From assembly GCA_030704615.1 (NCBI GenBank), contig CM060733.1, forward strand, positions 31,124,001-31,188,000: a DNA stretch of 64,000 nucleotides, read 5' to 3'. This DNA is from Takakia lepidozioides. Lineage: Eukaryota; Plantae; Bryophyta. A model generated the notes under the pieces. The model was not told where the DNA came from, searched no databases, and saw nothing but the letters and a program-made list of their open reading frames with translations. This document shows, piece after piece, positions 6,785 to 38,265 of the stretch; position 1 is the stretch's first letter, and the number at the start of each line of letters is the position of its first letter. The translations under genes were made by a program, and so were the position numbers.

Positions 6785-9440
6785 CATGTCCAATGAAAAT
6801 GAGGTTCAACGCGTAGAACTTACTTGAATTTGTTTCCAGTTTGTGACATGGGCGAGGACCTAAAGGATGATCTGAAGGGCCTACCTACCCTCGGGACTGC
6901 ACTAAAATTAAACTAGGGGTGGGAAGCCTATCTTTGAACAAAAAACAGATGCAGAGAGGAAAAGGAGATAGTTGTTGCTGACTGTGCGCCTGAATACCTA
7001 CTCTCCATTTTCTGATACATTGTCTGACTCTTTCAGGTGTCACAGCCTAGATTAGCAAAGGTTGGTTATGGGCTTAAGCAAGCCATAAATAGTAAAAGTA
7101 TAAGAAAGGCTTTAAGCAAAGCCATGTACAGTAAAAGTATATGTATAGACTTACGCAAAGTCTAAAAGAAGGCTAGAGCCGGGTAAATCAAAAAGTATGC
7201 GATAAGAGCATAAAGAATAGCTACAGCCTGGATATCTTAAGAGCAAGGGGGTGAGACCTCAAAGAGTACTTCTAGGGGATTTGGTGCTTAGTCGAGAGAG
7301 GAGAACACAGTCAGGGAACAGAAGGACAAGTAGTCAGAGAGAGCGTGATGGTCAGACATGGTTACTCTAAGTCTTGAGAGAGCAAGGTAGTCTTAGCACC
7401 AAGAGGGATCATGTACTATCTTTAGTAAGCAGGCAAGAGAGGTCTCTAAGGTTGGGAGGTTATCTTGCTCAGAGGTGGCTTAGTTGTTAAGTACTTTCCA
7501 TAAAAGGTTTGATCGTTACATTTGGTATCAGAGCGATAGAATGACAGATCAGGGGAGTCAGGGTGCAGATGTACCACCAGTTGAGCTTAGGCCACCAGTA
7601 GAGGTTAGGCCCGAGTTTAATCACCAAGAAAGTTGTGGGAGCTCCTGAAGTAGCGAAGCTGTTTGTTCAGGATGTGTTTCGTCTGCATGGATTACCAATG
7701 TCCATAGTATCAGACAGAGATCCTAGATTTACTAGTCATTTTTGGATGCCGTGTTTAAGACTTTGGATACAAAGCTAAACATGAGCAGTGGAGATCATCC
7801 ACAGAGTGACGGACAGATTGAAAGAGTAAATCAAGTTCTAGAAGATATGTTGCGGGCCTATGTAGGTGACAGACCAACCTCATGGGAGAAGTATTTGCCA
7901 TTGTTAGAATTTGCATACAATGACTAAGTCCATTTGAGCTAGTATATGGGTATAGACCCATGAGCCCAGTTATGATTGGATTTCCACAAAATGTACCTAG
8001 TGCAGCAGAGTTTGTAACTCAAATGCAAGACCAGCTAGCAAGTGCAAGGTTGTATATCCGTAAGGCTTCAGATCGGGCTAAGAGTTATGCGGATAAGAAA
8101 TGCACTTTCAGGGAATTCAAGGTGGGGGACAAAGTGTTCCTATTGATACCATTACCTTCACCTACCCTTGTGAAAGGGAAAGGTAAGAAGAAGGGTAAGA
8201 AGTTATCTCCTCAATATTGTGGACCTTGGCTGATTGTGAAACGCATTAACAGTGTTGCATATAAGCTAGAGCTTCCAGAGTCATGCAAGATACATCTAGT
8301 GTTTCATGTCAGTAAGCTCAAGAGGTAGGTACATAATGGGGATAATTTGGTAGAATGAACTATATTTTTACAGGAAGGGTCAGAGAGTGACCAACACGGA
8401 CCTTGGCAGATTTTGGACAAGAAAGAACGCAGATTGCGTAGTCGTCTCATCAAGGAGTGTTTGGTTGCATGACATGGGCTTCCTTTGACTGATGGTACTT
8501 GGGAGTCTGAGCAGACACTGAGGCAGAAATACCCAGACTTTGTCATTGAGGACAATGACGAAGCTTTGAAGGGGTAGAGAATGTCACAACCTAGATTAGC
8601 AAAGGTCAGTTATGGGCTTAAGCAAGCCATAAATAGTAAAAGTATAAGAAAGGCTTTAAGCAAAGCCATATACAATAAAAGTATAAGTATAGACTTACGC
8701 AAAGTCTAAAAGAAGGCTAGAGCCGGGTAAATCAAAAAGTAAGCTATAAGAGCATAGAGAGATGTCAAGAATAGCTACAGCCTGGATATCTTAAGAGCAA
8801 GGGGGTGAGACCTCAAAGAGTACTTAAAGGGGATCTGGTGCTAAGTCGAGAGAGGTGAACACAGTCAGGGAATAGAAGGACAAGCAGTCAGAGGGGGCGT
8901 GATGGTCAGATGTGGTTACTCTGAGTCTTGAGAGAGCAAGGCAGTCTTAGCACCAAGAGGGATCCTGTACTCTTTAGCAAGCAGGCAAGAGAGGTCTCTA
9001 AGGTTGGGAGGTTATCTTGCTCAGAGGTGGCTTAGTTGTTAAAGTACTTTCCATAAAAGGTTTGATCGTTACATCATGAACATCAAGAAAATGGTTCATG
9101 CACCTTTGTTCACCAAGTTTGAAATCTTGAGGCTGAGCTTAAAGCCCTGGCCCTGTACAGGTACATTTTGCAGAGCCCACAAGTACCAATTTGCACACAT
9201 AATATGGTCGTCTAGGGTTTTGGGAGCGCCTAAGTGCTGGGAAGCTCACTTTCAGCAGGGATTTCTAGAGGATATCTGGAAAGCCCGACCTAGTTGTCTA
9301 TACCAAGGTAAGTCCCACTACTGGAGTGAGACCCCTCACAAAGGTAGAGTCTGTTCCCTTTTGTGCTGCCCAATCTGGGCGCAGGGTCTTTGGGCACAAG
9401 GCTACAGCAAACATCGTTTTGTAAGTACATCTCTACGGCT
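6785..9440 (+). mobile_element. Degenerate LINE 3' fragment (6785-7037 and 9074-~9440), split by an LTR element
   Basis: Homologous to the 12104-12742 ORF (GEDLKDDLKGLPTLGT...; PLFTKFE...GFLEDIWK...). Ends in tail gtacatctctacggctct. Confidence 0.75.
7038..9073 (+). mobile_element. Internally deleted Ty3/gypsy chromovirus: LTRs 7038-7520 and 8582-9073
   Basis: TG..CA LTRs, tRNA-Met PBS TGGTATCAGAGC (7523-7534), PPT before 8582, TSD tcagg/tcatg. Interior has only the integrase C-half ([32 protein letters not shown]) and a chromodomain (ILDKK..CLVA*HG..GTWE). Confidence 0.92.
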
Positions 9441-9699
9441 CTGGTTTTGTTTTGTTTTGTTGCATTTGGGTTGTTTTGGCCTCCCACAGCTGCAAAAAAA
9501 TTGTTTGTTGTTTTTCCTTCTCTCTTGCTCAGGCTCTCTTCCGCCTGTTCCATAAGCTCTTTGAGCTCCCCGTGGATGGTAGGACATTGAGACTAGAGAA
9601 TACTTTTTTTTTTTCACTTTTCTCGCTACTGTGAGATGCAGTGTCGATACAACTATCTAATTCCTTGCTGACCGGAAATTGGCAGTGGATCTGAGCGAG

Positions 9700-10320
9700 G
9701 CTCTCCAGGTAAGGCAATATCTTGACGTTGAATAGTTACTTTGGGCGGCTTATTTATTGCCTTACTCTCTCGACATCTTGGAACAGTTCTCCAATGACTA
9801 TGGGTTGCAAGTCAACCTTACAAAAACCAAGATCATGGTTTTCAATGGGCAGGCCGACCGCAGATTCTTCCTCAACAATCGGGAGGTGGAGATAGTCAAA
9901 TCCTACTGGTATCTGGGGCTGGTTATCCACTCCCCCAAATTCCACTTTGCAACCATTGCCCTGGATAGATTGACAAAAGGCAAGGCAGCCTCCATACGCC
10001 TTCACGCCAAATGCAAGCAGATACACCTGCGCCACCCACCGACCAAGAAGTGGCTGTTTGATAGCGTGGTCACCCCAAATGTCACTTTTGGTTGTGAATT
10101 CTGGGCACCTGCAGTCCCAATTTCCTGGTGGGAAAACAATCTAGAACCATTGGAGTCATCTTTCCTCCAAGCAATGCTTGGTGCCAGAGGCACAATTCCA
10201 TCGCACACATTGAATGCAGAATTTGCCTGTGTTTCATTGAAATTAATCGAACCAACATGACGGATATTCTCTCGCCCATGCAGAGAATAGACAAGGATCA
10301 CCCACGGATCTTGTAGTACA
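9700..10320 (+). mobile_element. LINE reverse transcriptase C-terminal fragment
   Basis: LEQFSNDYGLQVNLTKTKIMVF, VKSYWYLGL, LFDSVVTPNVTFGCEFW. Confidence 0.8.
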
Positions 10321-10855
10321 GAGGACAGTGAAAGAAGAAATGTTCTTCACTTTCAACTTCCCTCTTGTTTTCAGTTTTGAGAAAATGACATGCCTGGGAG
10401 CCAATCTGCATGAGGTATCTTGTTGTTGGGCATCGTCCACATTTTGCGTGAAGTGGTGTACTTCATCCCATGGGCCATTGGGGCCCATGATGGACCTCAA
10501 TCTGGATCATTGCCTATTTAGAAACAGCCAATCCATGGGAAAGGTGATCCATTATGCATATCAGAGATGCCTTGTGGCATATATAAATGAGGATATCCAA
10601 TTTAGAAAATTACTTGGTGACAGGTGGTTGGAGGCTCCCCTTTTCTGCTTTCCTACTATGTTTGCACCATGACCACTAGGACTTCCCCTACAATTGAAGT
10701 TTTAGGGATTTAAAAAAAAAATTATGGACTGGGCACTACACAACAATGTAGATGTCTAGTACTTGAAAGATTCACCCCCATGCTTCATGAATGAGCTCCT
10801 TAGCTGCAATAAAAAGATGTAAGCACCATCATAGAAAACCAGTAGTGGACGTTAC

Positions 10856-11263
10856 CTGCAAACATCTGCTCACGCACGCGCTTCACCAGGTTCTCTCCCA
10901 TGACACCAAAGGAATAGTGTTGGGCAAGGTAGCCAAACAAAGCGACAGCCCCAACCAAGCCTGCAAAATATAAGTGAATACTTGTTGATCTGTTTCTCCA
11001 TATTTCTATGATCTGTAATGTAGTAAGCACTCAAAACCAGGCTTATAAGAAGTGCAAATCCTGGGTTGAGGACACCCGTTATACACGATCCAACCGTACC
11101 AACGAGCAGGCATTCAGGCAAGTTCATCTTGAACATACGTAGAATGGATCCACGGGGGACTGGCTCTGAAATATCCATTTCTCTCATCGAAGACTCTGAG
11201 ACATCTGATCTGAAACTGTGGCTCGGCTTCCTGCCTGATTTTGACATGCTCGACCTGGAGATC
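10856..11263 (-). pseudogene. ABCB transporter exon (linker and start of TMD2), frameshifted
   Basis: VGTVGSCITGVLNPGFALLIS...QHYSFGVMGENLVKRVREQMFA, with an AG acceptor at 11265-11264 and a GT donor at 10855. Confidence 0.85.
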
Positions 11264-11769
11264 CTGTCAGGAGAGATTGACAGAAGAGAGTAAGAAGAAA
11301 TGTGTTACATCCACAGGAAGCCCTCAAGACCCATTTGCCACATCAGAACAACACGTGTAGGATTCTTTCACTGGTTCAGTGGTTCCCTTGTGTTGCTCAT
11401 TTCTCAGAGAGATGAAATGAATTGATACTGTATAGCATCCACAAATAAGGGATAAGAATATAGACCCCACCCCCAGTTCCGGCTCAACAAAAGGGAAAAG
11501 ACACTAGCTTTCTGAGGGGCTCACTCCAGCGATGGATGAAAGAAAGCCTGAAACAAGAAAGAGATGGGGTCCCCAACAAGCAGCCCCGCAGCAACTACTG
11601 ATCAATGGATTGCTTAGTATTTAATGCTTTGTGCAGAGATGCTGCCAAGCATCTGATCCTAGAAGTGGAGCACATCTGTGAGGGATTTGCTATCTCGGAA
11701 TAGACATGACGTCTCCCCCGAATCTCGAGAAAGCATGAAACAAGGAGAGAAAGGAAAAAAACAAACAAC

Positions 11770-12040
11770 AACAGGGAGAGAGCTCTCTGGTGAGAATATC
11801 CCCTACAATGTATCAGAAAATGGATATTGTCTTCAGGCTGCCCGCACAGCCGACATTTACAGTATCCTTTTCTTCTCTGCCCCTGTTTCTTGTAAGGTAG
11901 GCTTCCCACCCGGAGTATAAATTCCAGTCTAGTGCCGAGGGTAAGTAGGCCCTTGAGATCACCCTTAATGTCCTCGCCCATGTCAGACTCAAAACAAAGT
12001 TCAGGGAAGCTTTATGCCTCTAACTTCATTTTCATCGGAC
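11770..12040 (-). mobile_element. LINE 3' fragment (same family as 12081-13580)
   Basis: GEDIKGDLKGLLTLGTRLEFILRVGSLP...CRLCGQPEDNIHFLIHC. Confidence 0.8.
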
Positions 12041-12080
12041 AGTGTCGGGCAACTAACCATTCTGGCTTCAGACACTGCAA

Positions 12081-13580
12081 CCATAGAGCCATAGAGATTG
12101 TACTCATAAGACGTTGTTTGCCGTAGCCTTGTGGCCATTGACCCCGCGCCCAGTTTGAGCGGGAACAAAAGGGACAGAACCTACCTCTGTCAGGGGCTGA
12201 CGTTGGTAGTAAGACTTACCTCCATATAAAGAATTAATCCGGGTTTTCCAGATATCCTCTAGAAATCCCTTCACACAAGCATCAATCTGTTGTGTGTGAT
12301 TTGCCCAAAAACTAGGCCTCAGGAGGGCCTGGGCTTTTGGCTCAGCCTCGAGACTTTCAAAGTTGGTAAACAGGGGTACAGGCACAATTCCCTTAATAGA
12401 TTTGAAGAGAGCGTCTCTTTGGTGAGAGAACCCCAGACAGTGTATCAGAAAATGAATACCGTCTTCAGATTGCCCACACAACGGGCAATTGCACTCTCCC
12501 TTTCCTCTCTGCTTCTGTTTGTTGTTCAAAGGTAGGCTTCCTGCCCTGAGTTTAAATTTCAGTCTAGTGCCGAGAGTGGGTAGACCCTTGAGGTCATCCA
12601 AGATGTCCTCCCCCATGTCACAGACTGGAAACAAGTTTAGGGAAGTTTTCTGCCTAACTTCATTTTCATCAGACAATCTCATGGCAACAGACATGGCTGA
12701 GGACAGTACAGCCTCTAAGTCAGATTTATCCAGCAGGGTCAAGACTTGCGGATCCAGGTCCAGGTCCTTGAGAATCTCTTCTACTCTCTTCTGCCATGAC
12801 TTAGCCTGTTTGATAGACAGGGCGGTCCTGTTTCCAAGATATAGAGTCGATTAACTTAGGATATCTGGTGTTGGGCATATGTTGCAGCTGACCCCACCAT
12901 CTGACCTTGAATTCATCTTGTCGGGAGCTTAAGGACGGAATGCCAAACTCACCGCGAACAGCCACATTGGCTGTTTTGGATCATGCTGACATACACTCCT
13001 TAAGCACCCCCACTTGAATGGATTCTAGAGACTTAGCTTGGTTGGAGTTATCAACCCATATAGCAGATCTGTACTCCAAGGCAGGTCTAATAACGCAAAG
13101 CATGGTTTTCTTAACCTCAGAGTTGACCCCTCTGCAGTGGAAAAATTTAGTGAGCCCCAGAGCTTTGCCCTTGCCAGTTTGAACAACTTTCCGGATATGT
13201 GCATCCCAATTACAATTGGAGGAGAACTCAACGCCCAGGTAAGTGTAGGAAGGGAGGACCGGGATCTCTTGGCTACTCCACTGCCACTTAAGATCACTTC
13301 CTCCCTCTCCTCTGTCGTTGAATGCTACCACTGCACATTTGCTGACATTAGCCTCTAGCCCCCAAAGATCAAAGTATCTCTTCGCGCAATCAATCAACTC
13401 CTGGAGATTGGTTGGAGTCTCCCCTATGCCTGCGAAGTCATCCGCAAACATAAGGGCTAGTATGGTGGTATCACCCACCCTTAACCCAAATCCCTCACTT
13501 TCCACATCCTCGAGGAGTTGATTGATGAAAACATTGAAGAGCAGAGGGGAGAGAGTACAACCTTGAGCTACACCTTACTA
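12081..13580 (-). mobile_element. 5'-truncated LINE ORF2 (RT plus C-terminal CCHC-like motif) with a short tandem-repeat tail
   Basis: GVAQGCTLSPLLFNVFIN, LMFADD, YTYLGV, LRAGSLPL, CPLC..ED..HFLIHC. Tail reads CAATCTCTATGGCTCTATGG. Confidence 0.9.
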
Positions 13581-13924
13581 AATGCTCCTCATTTGGTTGT
13601 GAAGGCATTGTCATCATCAGAAGGATTTGTAGTGAGCCGTGGTGCGATGCTCAATTGTTGCGTGAAGGGTTGAGATTCTCGTTTCCTGTTTGTGCTGTTG
13701 TGGATCTATTGGTTTTTCTCTTTATCTCTCTCTCTTGTCCAGCTTGTAACTTTAGTTTTTGTTCCTGCAGGTTTTGAAGCATTTGCTGATGCATAGGCCT
13801 TGTATGGCATAGATATATAGTGATAGCTTCTTCGGCAACACTCCGCCATTTTTCTTCTGAAAAACAATGAAACACAGGATGTATGTATGTAAGACCATGG
13901 GGATGACCCACCCCTTTTTGTACC

Positions 13925-14160
13925 AATTGAATGTAGTTCTCAGAATTCGTCGCTAGTAGTGCGGAGCAACGCGAAGCCCTAGTTCTAGCGATGACCGAAG
14001 GTCGGAAGCTAGTTTAGCGTAGAGCAGGAATAGGGTGCCATAGTGCCACGTTTTTGTCGCCACGTCATCGTTGCCACGTTTCATCGCCACGTTTCGTCGT
14101 CAAATTCTTTGGAATCTGCCCGAGCTGCCCGCCCGGAAAACGCCAATAGAATTTCGCGCC
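13925..14160 (+). mobile_element. Helentron/Helitron2-like tail-to-head junction, copy 1
   Basis: TCGTCGCTAG (13947-13956), GNA-loop mini-hairpins and CTAG, directly followed by TTCTAGCGATGACCGAAGGTCGGAAGCTAG and GCCACG-rich repeats. Near-identical to 18625-18850. Confidence 0.6.
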
Positions 14161-14297
14161 AAGTGTTTCGAAACTGCCCAAACTGCCCTGCATCTTTGAT
14201 CTCTTGAACCACAGGAGGGGTTTCACAGGCCGATCGCGATTCGCAGATGGAGACGTTCAGAGATTATGAGTACGCAGCAGGAGCTCTCGCAGCAGAT

Positions 14298-17200
14298 GGT
14301 GGGACAACTGCAATAGCAAGGTGTGGCTTTTCTTAATGTACGATGTGACGAAGTTTGTCCATCCTGCAAATGGGGGTTCTTAGTACCGTGATTTGGTATT
14401 CTTCCTGATTTTTACAAGGTTCATGGGAGAATCAGCTTGGTCTTAGCAGGCCATGTTTCAATCTCTGCTTGCTCAGCTGCACCCGTGGTGGTTCTCACAT
14501 ACAATCGGACATTACCTGACTACAGACACAAGCAGCACACACAAAGGTCCTTTTGGGTTGATGGTCGCCAAATCCTCCTTGGGTCATGACACAAGGTCAA
14601 GGACAATGTGGTGAGGACAATGATTTGTGCAGAGGCATGGATAGCTAAGGAGCAGGGATAGTGTGTGGGTGGACAATAAACCTACATGGGTAGATGGTCA
14701 ACTAAAGGCAGCAGCTGCAGCGGCACAGTTGATAGAATTAGGCACCTCAACCATGACCACAACTTCTGAAAGAGGATCAAAAGAAGGAGTCCACAATGCC
14801 TCTTTTGGCACTTCTGGGCATGTGAAGATACTTTGTGCGGCAGGCAGCCTGACAAAGGCTCTACAGACTTCAAACCAAGGAGGCATTTCAGCGGATTCAG
14901 ATACGTATGTCTGTCTGTTGCTTAAGTGCATGAAGATGGAAGGTCTGGAAGCTGGAAAGCAGGTGCACACTCACATTATCCAAAGTGGATTCACAACAAA
15001 TGTTTTTCTACTCAACACCCTTGTCCAGCCTGCAAATCTTAGTTCAATCTCTGCCTGCTCAGCTGCACCGTGGTGGTTCTTACATACCAATCCAACATTA
15101 CCTGACTACAGACACAAGCAGCACACACAAGAGGTCCTTTTGGGTTGATGGTCGGCCAAATCCTCCATGGGTCATGACACAAGGTCAAGGACAATGTGGT
15201 GAGGGCACATTCTTCGACCTATTTCAGCCTGTTTTGCCCTCTCATCAGACTCAGCCCTAAGATGCATATTGAATTCTGTAAGTTAGCTGGTTGGGTACAA
15301 TGATTTGGTATTCTTCATGATGTTTACAAGGTTTTTGGGAGAGTAAGCTTGGTCTTAGCAGGCCATGCCCTCCAAGGTCACGTTCATTCTACTCTCAAGG
15401 CATGTGCCAGCATAGGTGCCCTGGAAAAGGGAAAACAGGTCCAAGCTGACATTTTGAAAGCTGGAATTGCACCAAATGTCATTCTAGAGACTGCCCTTGC
15501 TGCCATGTAGGCCAAGTGCGGGAGCATGAAGGAGGCCCGTCGAGTTTTCGACAATATGGCTGGACAAGATGTGGTTTCATTGTGCGATGATTGCTGCAGG
15601 ATATGCTCAGCAAGGGTGTGGTCACCTTGGAGACCTATGAGCAAATGATATGGGAAGGGTGGGTACCGGAAAAAGTCACATTCACTTCCGTTCTCAATGC
15701 ATGTGGCAGCCTGGCAGACCTGGAAAAGGGCAAAAAGATCCATGCTGGTATTATCAAAACCAGAATTGAGCCAAATATTGTCCTGGAAACTGCTCTTGCT
15801 AACATGCCACTTATCATACAGTGTTTGGTGAGAAACTGAGCAAGGGAATTTGAGATGCATATTGAATTCTGTAAGTTAGCTCGTTGGGTGTATCTGTGGT
15901 GTTTGATCATGTGGAACATAATGTTGGCAGGATTTACCAAGCATGGGTGTGGTAGGAATGCTTTGGAGACCTATGAGCAAATGTTGCGCTAAAGGGTGAA
16001 GCCCAACCACATCACATTTGTTTGTGTTTACAATGCGTGTGCAAGCCGGGGAGCTCTGGAAAAGGGGAAAGAGGTCCATGGTGACATCCTCAAAGCTGGA
16101 ATTGTACCAGATGTCATTCTGCAAACTGCTCTAGTGGACATGTATGCCAAATGTGGGTGCATTAAGGATGCGAAGGGAGTTTTCAACACTATGGCTGAAC
16201 AAGATGTGGTGTCATTGGACGCGATGCTTGCAGGGTATGCACAGCAAGAACGTGGTATGGAGGCTTTGGAGACTTATGAACAAATGATGGGAGAAGGAGT
16301 GAAGCCCGACCACATCACGTTTGGGTGCGTTTGCAATGCGTGTGCAAGCCTGGCAGCTCTGGAAAGGGGCAAAGAGGTCCATGGCGACATCTTCAGAGCT
16401 GGAATTGTACCAGATTTCATTCTGAACAATACCCTGGTGGACATGTTTGCAAAATGTGGGTGCATCTAGGACGCAATGGGAGTGTTCAACACTATGGCTG
16501 AACAAGATGTGGCGTCGTGCAAGCCTGGCAGCCCTAGAGAAGGGCAAAGAGGTATGGACAGCAGGGACGTGGGATGCAGGCTTTGGAGACCTATGAGCAA
16601 ATGATGTGTGATGGGGTGAAGCCCGACCACATCACATTTGTGTGCGTTTGCAGTGCGTGTGCAAGCCTGGCAGCCCTGGAAAAGGGCGAAGAGGTGCATG
16701 GCGACATCGTCAGAGCTGGAATTGTACCAGATGTGATCCTGAACTCTGCCCTGGTGGACATGTATGCCAAATGTGGGTGCATGGAGGATGCAAAGGGAGT
16801 GTTCGACAATATGGCTGAATGAGATGTGGTGTCGTGGAATGCAATGATCGCAGGATATGCACAACATGGTTGTCATAGGGAGGTCCTGCAACTATTTGAA
16901 GGAATGCAAAAGAGCGGCTTGAAGCAGTATGTGTTCTCTCTGCATGCAGCCACACTGGCCTTCTGAATGAAGGTAGACGCTACTTCGATTCCCTGATTCA
17001 AGATCATGGTGTCACTCCGACAGTATAGCACTTTGGCTGCATGGTGGACCTTCTTGGACGTGCGGGACAACTGGATGAGGCAGTGGACCTGATTAATAAA
17101 ATGCCAATCAATCCAGATGTTGTGGTGTGGAAGGCCTTGTTTAGTGCCTGCAGAATCCATGACAATGTAGAGATGGCTCAACGTGCGGCAACATCTATCC

Positions 17201-17721
17201 TCAAGTGGAATGAACAGGATGCCGCGACTTATGTTGCTATCAAACATCTATGTTGCAGCTTGCAGGTGCGTTGATACTGTAAAGGTAAGAAGAATGATGA
17301 AGGTCAGAGGGGTTGAAAAGGAGCCTGGTTACTGCTGTATTGAGGTTTGCAACAGGGTGCACACCTTCGTTGTAGATGACAAGTTGCATCCCAGAATTAA
17401 GGAAATCCATGCTGAGCTGAGAAGATTGTCTGGGAAGATGAAGGAGGCGGGGTATGTGCACTTTGTATTGCATGATGTGGGGAGGAGGAAAAGGAATTTT
17501 CTCTTTGCCACCATAGTGAGAAGCTGGCCATTGGTTTTGGGCTGATCAGCATGACCCCTAGGACGCCTCTCCGTCTCATCAAGAATCTTCGAGTGTGTGG
17601 TGACTGCCACACCTCCACCAAATTCATCTCAAAGATTGTTGACCGAGCAATTGTTGTATGGGACGCTAACTGCTTTCACCACTTTGAAGATGGGATTTGT
17701 TCTTGTGGTGATTACTGGTGA
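14298..17721 (+). pseudogene. Near-complete PLS-PPR-E-DYW RNA-editing factor pseudogene
   Basis: N-terminal module, P/L/S repeats, E domain ([10 protein letters not shown]), PG box (KEPGYCCIEV), HSEKLA, CGDCH, CSCGDYW* (TGA ends 17721). Many stops, frameshifts and internal duplications. Confidence 0.9.
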
Positions 17722-18139
17722 AAGGATGTCTTCTTGGAAAGATGCGAGTGTCTTGCTTCATTTATTGATCTGTGACTTAGCTACTCACACCATCCACCAT
17801 TTCCCGAAAGTATTGACCATGATGTACTGTTGAGTGTATTTCCTATGCCATAAATCCACAGGAAATGATAGTGGGGTCTACCCGGCATAGGTGGGAAGTC
17901 AGCCCATAATTGCACTTGACTAAAGGGGTGATTTTTGACCGATTCTGGTGACAGTGGATGGAAATCAGAGTGCTGTCCTAATTCTGGGTTTGGGTGGTGG
18001 AGCTTCTCCAAAGCTTCAAGATGGAAGTGAATACGAATTTTAATGAGCTTGATGAGAGGGGCAGCCCTGTGCACAAGTTTGTTCAGCATCAATGGTGGGA
18101 CAACCGAGGCAAAAATGTGAATGCCTGTCTGATTACCTG

Positions 18140-18495
18140 TCATTCTGAACACTATGGCTGAACGAGATGTGGTGTCGTGGATTGTGATGTTTGCAGGGTA
18201 TGCACAACAGGGGTGCGGGATGGAGGCTTTGGAGACCTATGAGCAAATGATGGGGGAAGGGGTGAAACCGCCCACATAACGTTTGTGTGCGCAAGTGGAA
18301 GCCGCAGCAGCAGCGGCACAAGTGGACATGTATGTTAAATGTGGGTGCATCGAGGATGCGAAGGGAGTTTTCAAGACTAAGGCTGAATGAGATGTGGTGT
18401 CATGGAACTCAATGCTTGCAGGGTATGCATAGCAGGGGCGCGGGATGGAGGCCTTGGAATGATGTGTGAAGGGGTGAAGCCTAACCACATCACGT
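18140..18495 (+). pseudogene. PPR motif fragments
   Basis: MAERDVVSW..AGYAQQG.GMEALETYEQM, with stops. Confidence 0.8.
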
Positions 18496-18624
18496 GCATC
18501 GGTATTTGTTGTTTCCTTCGAGGTTCAGTGTCGGGATGCTATGGAGGGCTTGGGTTTCTCGATTTTTCTGGATTTTTTTTCTTTCCTTATTTCAGGAGGG
18601 CAATCAGTGCAGCTACATGGGGTG

Positions 18625-18850
18625 CCAATTAAATGTAGTTCTCAGAATTCGTCGCTAGTAGTGCGGAGCAACGCGAAACCCTAGTTCTAGCGACGACCGA
18701 AGGTCGAAAGCTAGTTTAGCGTAGAGCAGGAATAGGGTGCCAAAGTGCCACGTTTTTGTTGCCATGTCATCATTGCCACATCACCATTGCCACGCGTTTT
18801 GTCGCCACGTTTCGTTGTCAAATTCTGTCAAGTCTGCCCGAACTGCCCGA
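18625..18850 (+). mobile_element. Helentron/Helitron2-like tail-to-head junction, copy 2
   Basis: TCGTCGCTAG (18649-18658) is the exact reverse complement of CTAGCGACGA (18687-18696). Junction CTAG|TTCTAG at 18684/18685. Confidence 0.6.
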
Positions 18851-18963
18851 ACTTGTCACTCACGCGCGCGCGCTGCTGCTTCTTTCTCGCTCGCTGTCTT
18901 CGTTTATGTTTGCGTGTCTCTGTGTGCGTCTGCCTTTGTGTGCTAGGTGTGGTTGCTGGAATC

Positions 18964-19073
18964 ATGGCTGGTGTGGAGGGATAGCACCAACAATGCAGGA
19001 GAAATTCACAACGAGGAGGAGAAGAAGCCTTTGGAGGGGGGGAGGTCACATTAATCTGAAAGTGAAGGGTCAG
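18964..19073 (+). pseudogene. SUMO: Captured SUMO exon 1 fragment
   Basis: Removing one G from each of two G-runs gives MAGVEDSTNNAGEIHNEEEKKPLEGGGHINLKVKGQ, matching the plant SUMO N-terminus. It ends where exon 1 ends, but the donor reads GG. Confidence 0.8.
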
Positions 19074-19144
19074 GGAATGGAAGCCCGTGGCATTTTTGTA
19101 GGGTTTGTTTCCCTGTTAGGCTTGAAGTCGTTAGGATCGTAGAG

Positions 19145-19365
19145 AATGGCACTTCTGGGCATGTGAAGATGTTTTGTGCGGCAGGCAGTCTGACAGAGCT
19201 CTACAGACTTTAAACCAAGGATCCAAGCATGAGATGCTTTGGAGACCTATGAGCAAATGATGCGTGAAGGGTTGAAGCCCAACCACATCACGTTTGTTTG
19301 TGTTTATGACCAGATGATACACAAAGGGGTGATGGCAAATGCGGTCACATTCACTTGCGTATACC
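19145..19365 (+). pseudogene. PPR fragments (N-terminal and P/L pieces)
   Basis: GTSGHVKMFCAAG..., ALETYEQMMREGLKPNHITFVCV. Confidence 0.75.
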
Positions 19366-19804
19366 ATAGCCACCAACTTGACAGGAAATGGTCAGCTTAT
19401 AGATCAGTTTCGCTACATCAGGTGTTAGAAAGTTTCTTTCTTCTAAAGTTGAATCAGAGTTTTATGGTTGTAGTGGCTGGTTGGGGCCACAATTTTCTTT
19501 CCTGAATTGGAGTTGACCATTTTGTCTTTGCAAAACTGGCCTTCCCTAAGCCGTGCTTCAAAAGCATGTTGCTCCATGCTTGTTGCCCGAGCCCATTAAG
19601 CTACTGTTGGCTTCTGCCCAATCTGTTCCATCAAGCTATCCCTCACTTTTTCCATTTAAAAAAAATCCTCCACACCCATCATTGGCACCATAGTTTGTTA
19701 CTTCTAAAACAGTATCTGAGAGCAGGAGATTGTATCTCTCCTCTTCTGCCTTCCCAAAAGAATGTCTCTCAAGCAAAGTCCACAAATCTGTCTCACGCCG
19801 AGTC

Positions 19805-20025
19805 TGATTAGAGGGCAAAACAGGCTGAAACAGGTCGAAGAAGAAGGTGCCCTCACCACATTGTCCTTGACCTTGTGTCACGACCCATCGAGGATTTAAC
19901 CGACCATCAACTCCATCAACCCAAGAGGACCTCTTGTGTGTGCTGCTTGTGTGTGTAGTCAGGTAATGTCGGATTGGTCTGTGAGAACCACCACGGTGCA
20001 GCTGAGCAGGCAGAGATTGAAACAC
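19805..20025 (-). pseudogene. PPR N-terminal module, inverted copy
   Basis: SISACSAAPWWFSQTNPTLPDYTHK.../NPRWVVTQGQGQCG, as at 14455, 15040, 21850 and 41240. Confidence 0.75.
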
Positions 20026-20094
20026 GGCGTAAGCCCAAGCTGACCCTTGTAAATGCGCTCAAGGACGCGGGGGCATCCCTTCCCCGCGCTGCTT

Positions 20095-20273
20095 TTCGGG
20101 CATTTCGGGCAGGTTCCAAAGAATTGACGACGACGATGACCTGGCTACAATGACATGCGACGAAATGTGGCTACGATGACATGTGACGAAACGTGGCAAC
20201 GATGACTTGGCACTATGGCACCCTATTCCTGCTCTACGCTAAACTAGCTTCCGACCTTCGGTCGTCGCTAGAA
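20095..20273 (-). mobile_element. Helentron/Helitron2-like terminus, copy 3 (free end)
   Basis: Reverse complement of TTCTAGCGACGACCGAAGGTCGGAAGCTAGTTTAGCGTAGAGCAGG..., flanked by AT-rich TAATATA and lacking the tail part. Confidence 0.6.
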
Positions 20274-20359
20274 TATATTAATAGCAAGGTAATAGGAAGC
20301 AATTGAAATGTTAAAGTGCGCCATGTTTTTTAATATGTTTTTTGTTTGTGTTTTTTTTT

Positions 20360-21000
20360 CCGTGGCGGCGCCAGCCTCGTGGGTCCACGCCAGGCCACAA
20401 GCTTGGTGCACTTGGCCAGGCGCTACAGCCGCGTGGCCAGTTTCCGCACGCGCGGGGAAGGCGTCACGTCACGTGGCGCGGTGTTTTTTTTTTTTTTTTT
20501 TTTTTTTTGGGGGGGGTTTCGGCCGCACTCTCGGCGCGTCGCCACGCGGCCAGGTGGTACATCCCGCACATGCGCGCCCTAGCCTGCCACTTCCGCACGC
20601 ACTGACAGGTGCCATGTGGCGAAGCGCCAATTTGTATTTTTATTTTTATTTATTTTTTGGGTTGGGTTGGGTTGGTGGCGGCCGCACGCTCGGCGCGTCG
20701 CCACGCGGCCAGGCGGTACAGCCCGCACGCACGAGCTCTGGCCTGCCACGTTCCGCACGACGAGCTGGCGGCGCTACGTGGCGAAGCGCCAAATATTGGT
20801 GTTTTTTTTTTTTGATTTGGTGGGTGGCGGCGCCTGTTGACGCGCCTCGCCTCGTGGGCCCACGCCAGCGTATGGCGCCTTCCCGCTCGTGTGTAATGTG
20901 GCTCGTGGGGCCAGCGCGCGCGCGGGCGTTTTGCAGCGCCAGGCCACGGGGCGAGGCGCCATGGATTTTTTTTATTTTTTTTTTCAGATTTCGGTGGAGC
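20360..21000. repeat. GC-rich degenerate tandem repeat (~160-bp period) separated by poly-T tracts
   Basis: Units at ~20521 and ~20680 share ggccgcac.ctcggcgcgtcgccacgcggccagg...gtggcgaagcgccaa. Confidence 0.7.
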
Positions 21001-21574
21001 GAGCCAGGGAGGTTTTCCTAACGGAGCCGCCACTTCGTCCTCCTCCGTAACCCTAGCCGCCGCCGCCGCCGACGCCACCCTCCCAAATTTAAATGTGTGT
21101 TTTTTTTTTGCTGTTGGTTGATCACGGGGTGGCTGCCCTGTGTGGCGCTGCAGCTGTTGGATTTTGAAGATCCAACGGACGCGGGGTTGAGTAGATTTTT
21201 TTTTTTTTTTTTTGTTTGTTGGTTTGTCCGAGCCGTTGGATCTCACTACAACAGATCGAGGTATATCTGACTGCCGAGCCGTGGTAGTCATGGTTTTTCT
21301 GACTTTGACCATGACTTCCCTGTATTTTTGGACCAAATGGGGCTTCACGTAGTCGTTGAAATAACTACGTGACTACGTAGTCCTTGGGCGACTACTTTGA
21401 TAGACGTCGTCATGACTGCATGGCTCCGCACTAAACGGATGGTCAATGATGGTTGACCAGTGCGAGCTCACCACCAAATAGTCGCCGGAATGACTTCTAG
21501 TCCAAGCCTGGTAGCCAAAAGGTTAAAAAGGTTTAAAAATTGCTTATAGGGTTGTGCATGAGAGGGCAGGACTT

Positions 21575-21649: not shown

Positions 21650-23980
21650 GGAACGCGATGATCGCATGATAGGGGTGTGGGATGGAGGCTTTGCAGACCT
21701 ATTTTTGAGCTACTGATGCAGGAAGGGACGAAGCGCAACCTACACCGCAACCGCAATGGGCTCTTGGCTCCTGTTAGTACCATGATTTGGTATTCTTCCT
21801 AATGTTTACAAGGTTCTTGGGAGAGACAGCTTGGTCTTAGCAGTCCGTGTTTCAATCGACGCCCGCTCAGCTGCACCGTGGTGGTTCTCACAGACCAATA
21901 TGACATTACCTGACTACAGACACAAGCAACACACACAAGAGGTCATATTGTGTTCATGGTCAGTCAAATCCTCCATGGGTCATGACACAAGGTGGAGGAC
22001 AATGTGGTGAGGGCACCTTCTTCTTCGACCTATTTCAGCCTGTTTTGACCTCTCATACTGAATTTCTTTACGGTGGTGGGACAACCGCAATCACAAGGTG
22101 TGGCTTTTTCTTAATGTACCATGTAAATTTCTAAGTTAGTCCATTGTGCAAATGTGGGCTATTGGCTCCTGTTATGATTTGGTATTCTTCCTAATGTTTA
22201 CAAGGTTCTTGGGAGAGTCAGCTTGGTCTTAGCAGGCCGCATTTCAATCTCTGCCCGTTCAGCAGTGGAAATCGCAGCAGCGGCACAATTGATAAAATCA
22301 GGCACTGCTACTCAAGGCACATTCTTCAACACATTTCACCATATTTTCTCCTCTTATCATAATCGGCCCTAAATTGGTGAGGGCACCTTTTCTTCAACCT
22401 ATTTCAGTCTGTTTTGCCCTCTCATCATTAGGGTTGGGGTGTTTGCTGGAAGAGTGCCGGATTTCAAGCACAAGATTACCTATGATTCCCTATGGATCCA
22501 TTGCTACAAGAAACCTGCATGGGTAGATGGTGAACTGGAAGCCACAGCAGCAGCGACACAATTGATATATTAGGCACTGCTAATGAAGGCAACCTTCATC
22601 AACACATTTCACCCTGTTTTCCCCTCTTATCAAAATCGGCCCTAAATTTTCAGGTTGAATTTCTGTAAGTTACTGGTTGAGTGAACCTTTGATAGTTTGC
22701 AATGTGTGTGCAAGCCTGACAGCTCTGGAGAAGGGCAAAGAGGTCCATGGCGACATTGTCACAGCTGCAATTGTACCACATGTCATTCTGAACAATACCC
22801 TCGTGGACATGTATGAAGGGAGTGTTCGACAATATGGTTGAACAAGATGTGGGTATCGTGGAGTGTGATGATTGCAGGATATGCACAACTACGGCGTGGG
22901 ATGGAGGCTTTTGAGAACTATGACCAAATGATGTGCGAAGAAGAGAAGCCCAATCACATCACATTTGTTTGTGTTTGCAATGTGTGTGCAAGCCTGGGAG
23001 CTCTGGGAAAGGGGAAAGAGGTCCATGGTGACATCGTCAAAGCTGGAATTGTACCAGATGTCATCATGAACATTGCCCTGGTGGACATGTTTGTCAAATG
23101 TGGGTGCATTCAGGATGCGAAGGGAGTTTTCCAAACTCTGGCTGAACGAAATGTGGTGTCGTGGAACGCCATGCTTGCAGGGTATGCACAGCAGGGGCAC
23201 GGGATGGAGGCTTTGGAGACCTATGAGCAAATGATTGGGGAAGGGTGAAGCCCGACCACATCAGGTTTGTGTGCGTTTGCAGTGCGTGTGCATGCCTAGC
23301 AGCCCTGGACAAAGAGGTGCATGGTTGCATCGCCAAAGCTGAAATTTTACCAGATGTGATTCCCTATGGATCAATAGCTACAAGAAACCTGCATGGTAAA
23401 TGGTCAACTAAAGGCTGCAGCTGTAGCGGCACAGTTCATGAAACCAGGCACCTCAACCATGACCACAACTTCTAAAAGAGGATCAAGAGAGGGAGTCCAC
23501 AATGCCTCTTCTGGCACTTCTGGGCATGTGAAGATGCTTTGCGGCAGGTAGACTGACAGAGGCTCTACAGACTTAAAACCAATGAGGCATTTCAGCAGAT
23601 TGAGGTATGTATGTATGTCCCTTGCTTAAGTGCAACAAGATGGAAGGTCTGGACGCTGTAAAGCAAGTGCACACTTACATTATCCAAAGTAGATGCATGC
23701 CAAATGTTTTTCTACTCAACACCCTTGTCTCCATGTATGTTAAGTATGGAAGCATCATGGATGCTCACCAAGTGTTCAACAGAATGCCTCAACAATCTTT
23801 GATCACGTGGAATATAATGTTGGCAGGAGTTACCAAGCATGGGTGTGGTAGGAATGCTTTGGAGACCTATGATCAACTGCTGCACGAAGGGGTGAAGCCC
23901 AACCACAACACATTTGTTTGTGTTTGCAATGCGTGTGCAAGCTTGGGAGCTCTGGAAAAGGGGAAAAAAGAGGTCCATGG
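21650..23980 (+). pseudogene. Scrambled PLS-PPR pseudogene pieces (upstream/N-terminal modules and P-L-S repeats)
   Basis: ORFs 22838-23248 and 23607-24032 are PLS motifs. The N-terminal modules are duplicated. Confidence 0.85.
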
Positions 23981-25931: not shown

Positions 25932-26936
25932 TGTTAGAGGACTGTCAGGGACTTAGACACTTTTACAGGATCTGAGGAGTACCCTTAATTTTTGCACAGA
26001 CTGAGACCAACAGGAGCCTTAGGGGTGACAACAGCGCAATGTAGAGGGGGGTTACACAGCCAACACAGCCTGTCACAGCCAACACAGCCCGTCACAGCAG
26101 TCACAGCCCGACACAGCCCAACACAGTCGCACAGCCAGTCACAGCCCGACACAGCCCAACACAGAAGCACAGCCAGTCACAGCCCGTCACAGCCACACAG
26201 CCAGTCACAGCTTGACACAGCTGTCACGACCATAGGGAACGGATAGCAGGACAGGGAATGACTGTGGGGAACAACATCTGCGAATGGAACATGATTAGTT
26301 CACGGACGACGGTTAGTGAGGAAAACGGTTAGAACAACGGGTAGGAAAATAAAGCGAGGAGCGAGGACTGGAGGAGGATCACTTCTGGAGATCACGGCGG
26401 GGGAATCGGTTCTTGACATGGATTGTGGAGATCACTTCTTGACATGACTTCGGGAGGGGACTTCGGACATACGGAGGGAAATGAGGCAGAGAGCGTATCT
26501 ATGAGCAGAAAGAGGGAGAACACGGAGCAGAAGGAGGATGATCTGTGATGCTTAATAGAAGCAAACAGTAGAATTATAATGTAGAGCAGATTAGAGACTC
26601 CAGGGCTTTAGCCTGATACTTGATAGATATTAATCTGATACATACTTTATACTCACACTGTGTAGAGAGATCTGAGTGAAGCTGTGGAATGAATGGATGA
26701 GTTGATGGAATCCGATAGATTGATGAAGCAAACGGATACTTAATTATCAATAGTAAGGTAGCTAGCTAACATGAATGCGGAAAGGAAAACAAATAGGAAA
26801 CACCCCCATGATACAGTAGCTGTAGGTCATGACTGATTGTTCTGAGCGAGCTGAGTACTTAGAGATTTCCAACTCTTCTATCTTGGAGTTTCCGCCTCGG
26901 ATAGCAAAGGGATGGGTGAGTAAAAGCTGCGCGACA
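25932..26936 (+). repeat. 5' LTR containing a CACAGC-rich minisatellite
   Basis: Direct repeat of 38266-39295 with few substitutions and a different repeat count. Confidence 0.97.
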
Positions 26937-27524
26937 TTTGGCGACCATACTGGGAAACTGGGTCATGAACAACCAGATGTGACAGGCATCTGGTGGGATC
27001 ATGGTGGATGGAGAATTAAAGAATTTGATGTGAATCAAATTCCTTGTGAAACCAAGAAGGAAAGATTGTCCAAACGATTCTTCCAGAGGTTTTTGGAATT
27101 GCCAGACGGTTGTAAAGAAAACATTCTTAAGAGAGTGCATGATGCTGACCCAGAGTGGGGTCTGGAGAAAGGAGTGATAAAGATTTATCAAGTGGCCTGT
27201 AGAGGAAGAGCGCGTTGGTTACCAACATTGGTATATGTGATAGCATTGCTATCCATTAAGCGAGTAGAGTTTGAAGGCTGGGAGGAAAGAAAAGTGAATG
27301 TTTATACTCATATGCATGAAAAGCTTGTACTGGTAAAGAATTGGATTCCAAAGGATATTTTGTGGATCAAACTCACACCAAGAACAGCTTTCCAGACTTG
27401 TTTGCCATATGGTTATATGGTAACGGAGACTTCAAGTATAGCCAAGGGTGCATTGAAGCTTGAAAGAAACCCAGGCATATACGAGAGATATTACAGAAGA
27501 GAGTTTTGGTTATTGCCACATTAA
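26829..27524 (+). CDS. Upstream extra ORF of the LTR element, unknown function
   Basis: 231-aa open frame that starts in the LTR and crosses the PBS. No recognisable domain. Confidence 0.4.
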   Translation: MTDCSERAEYLEISNSSILEFPPRIAKGWVSKSCATFGDHTGKLGHEQPDVTGIWWDHGGWRIKEFDVNQIPCETKKERLSKRFFQRFLELPDGCKENILKRVHDADPEWGLEKGVIKIYQVACRGRARWLPTLVYVIALLSIKRVEFEGWEERKVNVYTHMHEKLVLVKNWIPKDILWIKLTPRTAFQTCLPYGYMVTETSSIAKGALKLERNPGIYERYYRREFWLLPH

Positions 27525-27546
27525 AAAGAAATGAAAGACATGAGAC

Positions 27547-30500
27547 ATGAGTGATGAAAGAGAAGCTAGACGCCAGAGATATTCAGCAAAAAGAGAAAGC
27601 TATCTGAAAGCTAATTATCCATATCTTTGGGAGAGAGGAATAGACATAGGGGAATCATCTGGACCTCTCACGCCATTAAGATCAAAGAGTACATCACCCA
27701 TTCCAGAAGAACTAGAGTTGGATGCCACTCCTTTTGTTTCTTTGCAAGAAAGATTAAGGGAATTGGTACGGGAAGAAGATCAATCACGAGGTGAAAGATC
27801 TGAGGTACATCCCTGGATAAAAGATTTGACGGAAATCTTTGATAAGAGTTGGCATGGAATACCAAAAGCAGGAACTCCAATTTCTGAAGCGGAAGGTTAA
27901 GGAGGAAGAGAGGATGTGGCAGAGCCAACGGAGAGTTCAGACTATCCAACACCATTGCAGTTGAGTTACATGAGTGAAGAAGAAACCCAAGGGCAGAACT
28001 TGGAGGATGAAAACAGAGAGAAGAAATTGGAAGAGGAAGAATATGAAGAAGTAGACCCAACAGCTGAGGTTGAGACTACAACCAGGACATCCCAACCCGT
28101 TGGACCTGGATCAAGTGGAGCACTTGGATCACAGGCCAACGAAGGTGTCGGCTCAGGAGGATCAGGCGGGCTGCCTGGATCTGGCTCTGGGGGGACATGG
28201 AGTGTGGGAATTAGTGCAACTGAAGCTGGGAATACTGTGAATATCGTGGGGCCGGAAGCAGGGAGTGCTCAAGGGCCACCACTTGGTGGAAGATCCACCA
28301 CAACTACAACAGGTCCTGAAGGACCAGCACCAGCAAGGGTGCCAGCACCTGTCAGTGGGCAGAAGGTAGGGCCACAGATGGCGTTACAACCAACACGGGC
28401 AAAACCACCTTTTCCAATATATTCAGGAAAAGGGGATCCCGATGTACACATTAGCCAATTTGAGCACATGTGTATAGTGAACAATGAGAATGGCGATGAT
28501 GCCAAGATGAGATTGTTTCCTTGTTCACTTATCAAGAAAGCAAGTGAATGGTATGCAAGATTCCCTGATAATCATTTCCTAACCTGGAATGGCTTGAATA
28601 CAACATCCCGAAATAGGTTCAGGACAAGTAAAACAAAGGATGAAGTGTATGGAAGTTTACAACAGTTAAAGCAAAAGAAGCATGAAACTGTTGAGGAGTA
28701 TAAGGAAAAGATGGAATTGATGATGAAAAAGCTGGCTGCAGTACCAGCACCCGGTTTACAGAAGACTTGGTTTGTGAGTGGACTAAGACCAGAGTTGCAA
28801 AAGAAAGTGGATATGTTACCTCATAATACAGTGGAGGAGGCATTTGAAACTGCAAACAGAATTGAGCAATTGGGAATGCTCAGGAGAGAGAAAAGGGATG
28901 ATGAGGACTCTGAGGATGAGTCAGATGAAGAAGAAGAGCAAGAACTAAAAAGGAAGAGTAAGAGAAAGGAGAAATTGAAGAGGGATAACTATGAGAAAAG
29001 ATTGGAAGAAATCTTGAAGAAGTATGCCACAGAGGCTGCAACACATTGGAGGAAGGGTGTATGGTGTGCAAAGTGCCAGAATGAAGGCCATACCACCACT
29101 GAATGCCACATGAAGGAGAAACACTGTACTATCTGTAAAATGGATAACCATTCTACTGAGAATTGTTACTACAACAGAAGGACAGCTGCTAGAGAACCTA
29201 GGCAAGTAAGGGTGCATCAGGTGCAGCCCCAGCCAAGAAGAAACAATGATCAGGACCACTATGGTAGGTCTGGTGGTTATAACAATGGCATGGAAGGGAG
29301 AGGTAATTCAAGAGGGAATTACCAAGGGAATTCCAGAGGCAACTATCAGGGTAATCCAAGGGGGAATTACCAGCCCGGGAATCAGGATTACAGAAATAAT
29401 CCAAGAGCAGACCAAGGGCGAGGACCCAAAGGTGAAGAACTGTGTTACTATTGTAATCAAGCCAGGACATCGCAAGGCAGCCTGTTCATTCTGGATTAGA
29501 CACCAGAATGAGATGAGAGCTCCTGTGAATGAGGGCCCAGTGGTGGCAGCTCGCATGGTTAGGCCATGCGTTGTACCAGAAGTAAGTACAATGATAGTAA
29601 CAAGAAGTAAAGCCAAACTAATACCTCCAGTAGTAGAGGAAGAAGATGATAATGAAGGTGGCAGTGATATGCCTGAAGATGATGAGGCTTGGAGAGATGA
29701 GAAGGAACTGCACAAGGAAGTGGCAGATACCATAAGGGAAATGCAGAAGAGTACTGATATTCCTGTGGCAGATTCCTGTGATTCTGATGGAGAAGAAGAA
29801 GTGAGTGAGGAGGAAAGGAAGAAAGAAGATGCAGACATGCAAAGTAATGAAGAGACTTTGGCTGAAGTAATATGCCAGACCAAAGCAGAAATTACCATTG
29901 GACAGCTATTGGCTGTGGCACCTTATTGTAGGCACAGGCTGTATCAAGCAATCAATCGAATTGCCCAGGAGACAGGAAACACAGACCTGAACAGCAAGGT
30001 GACCAGTTATACTGTGAAACCGGAAGGGTGAGAAACAGTCATGGACTTTGATGATTCTATGCCAGTAATCCAATTGAGAATTGGAAGCACAGAACTAACT
30101 GATGTACTGATAGATGGAGGTTCTGGAGTGAATATCATGACAGACCAATTGAGAAAGAAGCTTGGTCTAAGTAACATGAAACCAGCCCCATTTACAGTAA
30201 CAATGGCAGATCAAAGAAGTGTACAGCCATTGGGATTAATAAGAGGAGTTAAGATACAGATACAGAAGATGATCTTTATGATCACAGTAACTGTGTTAAA
30301 GATGGATGAAGTCATGGAGGCTTACTCCTTATTATTGGGACGTCCGTGGCTGAAACAGACCAGGGTATTCCATGACTGGAATTCTCAGTTACTAACCGTG
30401 CATAATGGGATACACGAGATACAAATTACCACAAAGAAATCTAGTAGATTACCTGCTACAAGAAGACCTCGAGGAGTCATAGAGTATGACTGGAGAGAAG

Positions 30501-33500: not shown

Positions 33501-33927
33501 CAAAGAGATGCTGGGAAGAGTCAATGCTAATAAGTTGAAGGGGTACACTGGTATCCATGACAAACCATTGCAGCATGATTTGCATGTTAAAACGCAAAAG
33601 AAGTCATGGGCTGCACCCGTGATACCAACGGAGTATGGAACACTTGACGCTAGGTCGAGCATATATGACCAGGGCGGGCAGAACAAGCGAGAAACAGCCT
33701 ATCACAGCCCATCACGACGTGACACAGCCTATCACAGCCCATCACGACATGACACAACATATCACAGCCCAGCACGGAGCAATACAGCCTATCACAGCCC
33801 ATCAAAGCGTGACACAGCCTATCACAGCCTATCACGGAGCAGCACAGCCTATCACAACCTACCACAACGTGTCACAGCCTATCACAGCTTACCACAGTGC
33901 ATCACATCCTATCACAACGTACCATAG
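27547..33927 (+). pseudogene. gag-pol polyprotein (Gag, three Zn knuckles, PR, RT, RNase H, IN), disrupted
   Basis: Gag (YSGKGDPDVH..LFPCSL..ASEWY), CCHC x3, PR LIDGGS, RT FLDD, RH CDASG, IN HHCC and core (WGLDFVGP, SDQG, QAE). In-frame stops end at 27900, 30031 and 32224; frameshifts at ~29460 and ~32660. Confidence 0.95.
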
Positions 33928-33960
33928 TATGACACAGCCTGTCACAGCTCAACACAGCCT
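33690..33960 (+). repeat. 30-bp tandem repeat at the integrase C-terminus (TAYHSPSRRD-like units)
   Basis: About 8 units of acagcctatcacagcccatcacgacgtgac. Confidence 0.9.
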
Positions 33961-34455
33961 ACTAGGGTTACACAATCCATAGAATCAGTAACAGGTGGAC
34001 GCACATTAACTTTAGGAAAATGGCCGACGGAAGAAAGGACGGAAATCAGTTTAAAAATAGACACGTGGAAGTCAGGGCGCGACACACAGCTGAGAAGGAA
34101 GTGCAAGAGCAGGTGTCATCAAGAAAGAGGACAAGAATGGCCGTCAAAGTACCTACTTAGCGCGTCAATTCAGATGAATGGCGGGCCCATTAATGAATAC
34201 GGAAAAAGGGGAACGGAACAAACGGCAAGTACAGAAAAGCGAAATTCTTGTCACATGTGTGATCCTAGTGGACAATCCAGCAGGGAAAGTCCACTAAAGA
34301 AAATTAAATCTAAAATCCAGTCACAGCAGATACAGCCAATCAAAAGCCAGAGAAGGGATCAAGAAATTGGAGGGAAATTAGGCGCAAGAGTCGGCGTCGT
34401 TCTAAGTAACGGGCGTCGCGAAGGGACAAACCATCAATGCGATAGCTTTGAAGCT

Positions 34456-38227: not shown

Positions 38228-38265
38228 ACCGTGAGGACACGGCTTTTTGAGAGGGGAAGGGGTAA

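Follow-up and report, generated by a model that had tools for sequence, protein, structure and literature searches.

Rolling-circle transposons of the HLE2 type (Helitron2/Helentron-like) occur in land plants, including Sphagnum, and the proto-Helentron itself falls within this group (PMC11417382). Among bat Helitrons, the 5' end of one element has been found inserted against the 3' end of another (PMC4778049). Replitrons, which are abundant in non-seed plants, are described with direct terminal repeats and without mention of inverted repeats (PMC10288648). A stretch of 64,000 nucleotides from Takakia lepidozioides (Bryophyta; assembly GCA_030704615.1, contig CM060733.1, positions 31,124,001 to 31,188,000 of the forward strand), hereafter the window, within which all coordinates are counted, probably holds a chain of non-autonomous HLE2-type transposons filled with decayed pieces of PDF-PLS-E-DYW genes that were captured as DNA. 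A sequence-only reading of this stretch had proposed a non-autonomous Helentron/Helitron2-type element carrying PPR-DYW cargo and lying tail to head with its siblings, and this proposal fits every structural feature tested. The sole complete non-autonomous element, unit 1 (13983-18684, + strand, 4,702 bp), has its left and right ends in matching orientation. Gene-capturing elements of this kind are already known, but no literature precedent was found for the cargo: the search, which covered few subscription papers, returned no report of Helitron-type elements with PPR-DYW cargo.

Unit 1 is delimited by two related blocks, A (13920-14131) and B (18622-18849). They were initially described as near-identical, which is true of their first 130 nt (95% identity, six substitutions plus indels) but not of the whole pairwise alignment (228 columns, 85.5% identity, E 2e-75). 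Each block is made of a right half of about 65 bp and a left half of about 150 bp, joined via CTAG-TT-CTAG. The joints start at 13983 and 18685, which confirms the spacing of 4,702 bp given by the sequence-only reading. A third copy, block C (20273 to 20095, - strand), corresponds, as had been noticed, to the left half alone: its homology ends exactly at the joint TT, and the DNA flanking it on this side is 74% AT. Exhaustive profile searches of the window found three left ends, all starting with TT, two right ends and no degenerate extra copy, all within 6.4 kb; an 18-mer of the left end is present in three copies, where 0.05 would be expected by chance. We also considered whether the 228-bp block, or the right half by itself, might be a stand-alone miniature inverted-repeat transposable element (MITE); this was rejected because C breaks exactly at the joint and because a closing repeat is missing from the right half.

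The ends themselves are organised as follows. The right (3') end of the upstream unit 0 (13920-13982, +) is identical to 18622-18686 at 62 of 65 positions, carries the 3' inverted repeat at 13947-13956 and two mini-hairpins at 13960-13968 and 13971-13977, and ends with CTAG; the DNA upstream of it has no relation to unit 1. The left (5') end of unit 1 (13983-14131, +) starts with TT, followed by a 28-nt GAA-loop hairpin (13985-14012) that encloses the 5' inverted repeat, by 13-mer subterminal repeats (14045-14099) and by short 9-mer repeats at its inner edge. The right end of unit 1 (18622-18684, +) has its inverted repeat at 18649-18658, 26 nt before the terminal CTAG, and is directly followed by the left end of unit 2 (18685-18849, +); beyond it lie unrelated DNA, over about 300 bp, and PPR pieces (19147-19358). 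The left end of unit C (20095-20273, -) is free-standing beside AT-rich DNA, and 64 of its first 65 nt are identical to the left end of unit 1.

The 10-mers at 13947-13956 and 18649-18658 are the reverse complement of 18687-18696 and thus form a 10-bp asymmetric inverted repeat, located 2 nt inside the left end and 26 nt inside the right end. The chance that the complement of a given 10-mer falls within 60 nt is, by simple arithmetic, about 5 in 100,000. The inverted pairing previously reported is real, but in copy A the left 10-mer carries one C-to-T mismatch (GAT for GAC) and matches at 9 of 10 positions. Likewise, the layout of a right half with mini-hairpins joined to a left half is seen in both blocks, except that the second mini-hairpin, GC-GAA-GC, is present only in A and is broken in B (GCGAAAC). 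The 28-nt hairpin of the left end is present in all three copies, with a folding z of -3.1 for B and C relative to shuffled sequences. The joint can be parsed in three ways, as CTAG/TT, as CTAGT/T or as an insertion into TT; the first of these would resemble the ends of proto-Helentrons (PMC4067079).

These ends display two of the features that characterise HLE2 elements, short asymmetric inverted repeats, one at the 5' end and the other 20-60 nt inside the 3' end, and a 5' hairpin overlapping the 5' repeat. Like the DINE-1/HINE Helentrons, unit 1 has a 5' subterminal repeat 2 nt from its end, a nested inverted repeat, internal short tandem repeats, a 3' subterminal repeat followed by palindromes, T-rich joints and no coding capacity of its own. 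It differs from them by the size of the repeat (10 bp vs 12-15 bp), the position of the 3' repeat (26 vs 38-60 nt from the end), the CTAG terminus and a heavy load of gene fragments, which are rare in Helentrons and HINEs (PMC4067079). In the same way, it shares with FoHeli1 and FoHeli2, a Helitron2 variant of Fusarium oxysporum, a T/TC start, a GAA-loop hairpin holding the asymmetric repeat, a 3' repeat 20-40 bp from the end, a size of about 5 kb and abutting insertions; unlike them, it has no transposase, ends with CTAG instead of ATTTT, lacks a strong hairpin at the 3' repeat and carries host gene cargo (PMC5148889). HelenSM92 from Sphagnum magellanicum, identified with HELIANO, is another example of HLE2-type ends in a moss with captured extra domains, but it is autonomous, with a GIY-YIG domain, and no PPR cargo is reported for it (PMC11417382). 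The gene-capturing non-autonomous Helitrons of maize and bats, which belong to HLE1, also have co-oriented, scrambled, intron-containing pseudogene cargo, a 3' CTAG and abutting siblings (PMC4778049); unit 1 departs from them by its asymmetric inverted repeats and 5' hairpin, its weak 3' hairpin and a cargo almost wholly derived from one gene family.

Two other assignments were examined and do not fit. Canonical Helitrons (HLE1) have a 5' TC after a host A, a strong hairpin 10-12 nt before a 3' CTRR and no inverted repeats; unit 1 shares the 3' CTAG, but its TC is preceded by T, its 3' hairpin is weak and its ends carry inverted repeats. Replitrons have short direct terminal repeats of about 6 bp and a Y1 Rep gene, whereas the ends of unit 1 have only the palindromic 4-mer CTAG in common and their dominant feature is an inverted pair. 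The end motifs and reference sequences had no match in metagenome contigs, viral contigs, prokaryotic genomes, plasmids or Rfam. Unit 1 would thus work like a non-autonomous gene-capturing HLE2 element; as no RepHel motif was found in the window, we infer its formal membership from the structure of its ends.

Units 0, 1 and 2 have in common only about 65 bp of right end and about 150 bp of left end, and their interiors differ. This rules out both simple duplication in tandem and a recent concatemer built from one unit; a rolling-circle concatemer of a single element was rejected on the same grounds, the tandem units not being identical. We prefer to see the array as a mixed chain, in which siblings would have inserted exactly against each other's ends, rather than as an old concatemer with replaced interiors. 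Each of the three left ends has a spacer of its own and enters the gene family at a different point, and PPR-family pieces are found within 50-300 bp after each of these ends in the element's own orientation, C and its cargo both being inverted. That cargo of the same orientation, with its intron, lies behind all three left ends, in spite of their distinct spacers, supports the claim that the family loads pieces of editing genes.

The cargo of unit 1 lies entirely on the strand of the element and comprises, in order, a PDF exon end, an intron, a PDF/linker piece, a mosaic, a PLS-E-E+-DYW body, 3' DNA and PDF/PPR scraps. About 60% of unit 1 can be aligned to a near-intact paralog located in the window (59374-56781). 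The first piece (14295-14619, +) contains the end of the PDF exon with the first half of the PDF motif, an intron and the start of the next exon, the position of the intron being the same as in the paralog. For both the paralog and the cargo, we take this motif to be an OSB-type PDF motif on grounds other than a Pfam match. The intron (14321-14500) has its donor GT at 14321, and its acceptor, at about 14500, is mutated. This piece is 85-96% identical to pieces at 15043, 19848, 21774 and 41070. It is followed by the end of the PDF motif, the linker and the first PPR motifs (14620-15028, +), which correspond to amino acids 56-125 of the paralog (tblastn and blastn) and are 88% identical to 23380-23729. 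Then comes an inserted mosaic of about 870 bp (15043-15901, +) with a second intron end and PDF exon, further intron pieces and a frameshifted PPR triplet; its first part, 15043-15207, is 96% identical to 14457-14619, also within unit 1, and PPR matches extend over 15394-15800.

The main part of the cargo is a PLS-E-E+-DYW pseudogene (15912-17721, +) matching PF13041, PF20431, PF20430 and PF14432 (E 3.7e-35), i.e., the PPR, E, E+ and DYW families of Pfam. The near-complete PLS-E-DYW pseudogene announced between the joints is thus present. It is interrupted by four stops (15990, 16467, 16820 and 17026) and four frameshifts (near 16519, 16926, 17236 and 17481), and still has the HxE and CxxC motifs and the terminal DYW. 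A frameshift-aware alignment with the paralog gives 380 identical columns out of 612; the joining of exons and the bridging of the paralog with X served only for local translation and alignment. A PDF exon fragment and two broken PPR pieces (18089-18495, +) complete the cargo. Unit C carries an intron end, with its AG intact, and a PDF exon (19797-20047, -), co-oriented with C and 93-95% identical to both copies of unit 1. The cargo is a co-oriented mosaic from one OSB-PDF/PLS-E-DYW gene family. In three protein searches with sequences of the window, the best matches, 46-55% identical, come from lycophytes, ferns, gymnosperms, liverworts and Sphagnum; none is from the same species, and a look-up for exact matches was likewise empty.

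The intron that splits the PDF motif is kept in both unit 1 and unit C, which indicates capture as DNA and not by retroposition. A retrogene is ruled out by this intron and by the absence of a poly-A tail after the DYW stop of the pseudogene. A functional PLS-E-DYW editing factor is also ruled out by the four stops, the four frameshifts and a ratio of nonsynonymous to synonymous substitution rates (dN/dS) of 1.07 against the closest sister pieces (95% interval 0.59-2.43; 171 codons). The corresponding ratio against the near-intact paralog is 0.38 (0.28-0.50). On these values, the pieces were duplicated, or drifted apart, while non-coding. The cargo of unit 1 is a dead, neutrally decaying pseudogene. 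The termini diverge by about 2-5% and the cargo sisters by about 10%. Copies of a 160-bp PDF piece that lie behind HLE2-type ends share 93-96% identity (93-95% between unit 1 and C), against 89-90% with the other two local copies; the bootstrap is 47. This faintly hints that the cargo may travel with the element family, and it lends slight support to the proposal of the sequence-only reading that the family amplifies its cargo.

The near-intact paralog is a PDF-PLS-E-E+-DYW gene (56781-59374, -) whose OSB-type PDF motif is split by a GT-AG intron of 263 nt (59350-59088) and whose E+ and DYW are parted by a short LINE-tail-like insertion (LINE, long interspersed nuclear element) with a stop. 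Neither HLE2-type nor CACTA-type ends are present near it. Two fields of PPR debris (21.6-24.0 kb and 41.0-43.7 kb) also have none of the ends of unit 1. Each of them lies behind an exact 13-mer CACTA-type left end (21244-21560 and 40096-40400, both +); the two copies are accompanied by about 300 bp of related subterminal DNA and lie upstream of co-oriented PDF-PPR fragments. No right end matching these left ends was found in the window, and the whole probably represents Pack-CACTA remnants. As PPR debris is found behind both HLE2-type and CACTA-type ends, at least two transposon superfamilies adjoin such cargo. In the second field, a PPR fragment (42490-43300, +) is amplified as a tandem repeat of about seven units of 107-112 bp, out of step with the 303-bp PLS triplet.

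If the HLE2 interpretation is correct, the asymmetric inverted repeats and the hairpins would be bound by a RepHel transposase whose gene lies elsewhere; in Helentrons in the strict sense, RepHel is fused to an AP endonuclease domain. This enzyme would displace one strand of the element and insert a copy at T-rich sites without duplicating the target. These sites would include the exact end of a sibling copy, which could generate repeated CTAG-TT-CTAG joints around differing interiors. End bypass or template switching could have brought pieces of the abundant PDF-PLS-E-DYW family into the interior at the DNA level, after which the interior would have decayed.

Several observations weigh against this interpretation. 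The inverted repeat is only 10 bp long, vs the usual 12-16 bp of HLE2 elements. Between the 3' repeat and the terminus, where HLE2 elements have a stem-loop, the right end has only 2-3-bp GNA-loop mini-hairpins, whose folding (z +0.32) is no better than that of shuffled sequences. Unit 1 is the one complete unit of the window, where units 0, 2 and C are without their other end, and none of the units is bordered by host DNA on both sides. The RepHel open reading frame with the same ends that the sequence-only reading had envisaged failed to appear, searches of the window for RepHel giving neither motifs nor Pfam matches. Furthermore, since the same debris lies behind CACTA-type ends, local PPR abundance could explain part of the association between ends and cargo. 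This last point is central to an alternative that we consider unlikely, in which the HLE2-type ends landed in, or were copied into, PPR debris already in place (the remains of a paralog cluster, or the cargo of Pack-CACTA elements), so that the 4.7-kb stretch never moved as a whole. It would account for the two PPR fields without HLE2-type ends, for the location of the closest sister pieces of unit 1 (88-91%) in these CACTA-linked fields and for the failure to find a second copy of unit 1 in the window, but not for the correct pairing of left and right ends around the cargo or for the orientation of all pieces along the element's strand, the inverted unit C included. The closer similarity of the 160-bp piece between units 1 and C than with the CACTA-linked copies also points, weakly, away from it. 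That the ends belong to another HUH single-strand element, either proto-Helentron-like or canonical Helitron (5' TT or TC, 3' CTAG, A-T target) or a Replitron with short direct terminal repeats, is extremely unlikely. Parsing the joint as CTAG + TT does leave the flank of unit C ending in A, as for proto-Helentron-Pi (PMC4067079), and CTAG is present at both ends in a lineage belonging to the non-seed plants, where Replitrons abound (PMC10288648); but a nested 5' hairpin combined with asymmetric inverted repeats is the mark of HLE2, to which the proto-Helentron itself belongs (PMC11417382), inverted repeats are never mentioned in the Replitron paper (PMC10288648), and the strong 3' hairpin of canonical Helitrons is absent. 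A plain local duplication or an assembly artefact is barely credible. The similarity of A and B is confined to the 228 aligned columns, which are bordered on either side by unrelated DNA and differ by six substitutions in 130 nt, besides indels; in addition, the homology of C ends precisely at the joint, and each left end leads into a spacer of its own.

A last alternative goes further than the chain of HLE2-type elements favoured here and assumes that functional RNA-editing factors are assembled and disseminated by the family, which would be a driver of PPR-DYW expansion in the lineage, as the sequence-only reading had suggested. It draws on the nearly whole PLS-E-DYW unit of the cargo, with its zinc-binding motifs kept, and on the 2,016 PPR genes of Takakia, mostly dispersed duplicates with limited retroposition features (PMC13386178). 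The cargo nevertheless has four stops, four frameshifts, a mutated splice acceptor and a dN/dS of about 1, and the near-intact paralog is without element termini in the window. Together with the debris behind CACTA-type ends, these observations leave the driver claim unsupported at this locus, and we regard it as very unlikely. The locus shows a vehicle and dead cargo only; the production of working editing factors is not supported.

The surroundings of the array contain various other sequences. The DNA just before the first right end (9076-13505) contains LINE fragments in both orientations, several in number, around an exon fragment that resembles an ABCB transporter (10870-11247, -), and may form the interior of unit 0; a weak match to an IBR domain upstream of block A (E 0.0017) was taken as chance. 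Beside the second joint, a non-PPR piece (18496-18621, +) resembles a short intron with flanking exon bits, and after the left end of unit 2 the region 18850-19146 (+) looks like a 5' untranslated region and first exon. Neither has a Pfam match; both may have been acquired from further host genes. Between unit C and the first CACTA-type end, 20274-21240 is GC-rich and palindrome-rich, with 159-bp tandem repeats parted by T runs. Further away, a young Ty3/gypsy long terminal repeat (LTR) retrotransposon (25932-39295, +) is flanked by a 5-bp target duplication (AAGCC). Its LTRs are microsatellite-rich and identical at 461 of 464 positions in the part tested, and it has long extra open reading frames (34174-38227) past the integrase region. 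The region 44849-45795 is MITE-like, with a 300-bp foldback (45444-45742, 83% self-complementary) within a larger inverted pair. Two host genes were recognised, an S1-domain PDE338-like first exon (50163-51398, -) and, by eye, an ALG2-like glycosyltransferase (52000-55634, +).

The origin of the thousands of PPR editing genes in early land plants is a standing question. A 2026 survey credits retroposition for the PPR expansion, yet reports limited retroposition features in Takakia (PMC13386178). A family of DNA transposons that regularly carried PPR-DYW pieces with their introns would offer a testable alternative route; if such a family exists, PPR gene counts in such genomes would be inflated by transposon cargo, and gene capture by HLE2 elements, though reported as rare, could be as heavy as in maize Helitrons. 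It is also conceivable, if quite unlikely, that HLE2-type and CACTA elements together form a DNA-level workshop that copies, reorders and disperses PDF-PPR-DYW modules, a minority of which, remaining in frame, would evolve into novel organellar editing factors of novel RNA specificity. Such a workshop, if it exists, would offer a path other than retroposition to the dispersed PPR duplicates described in Takakia.

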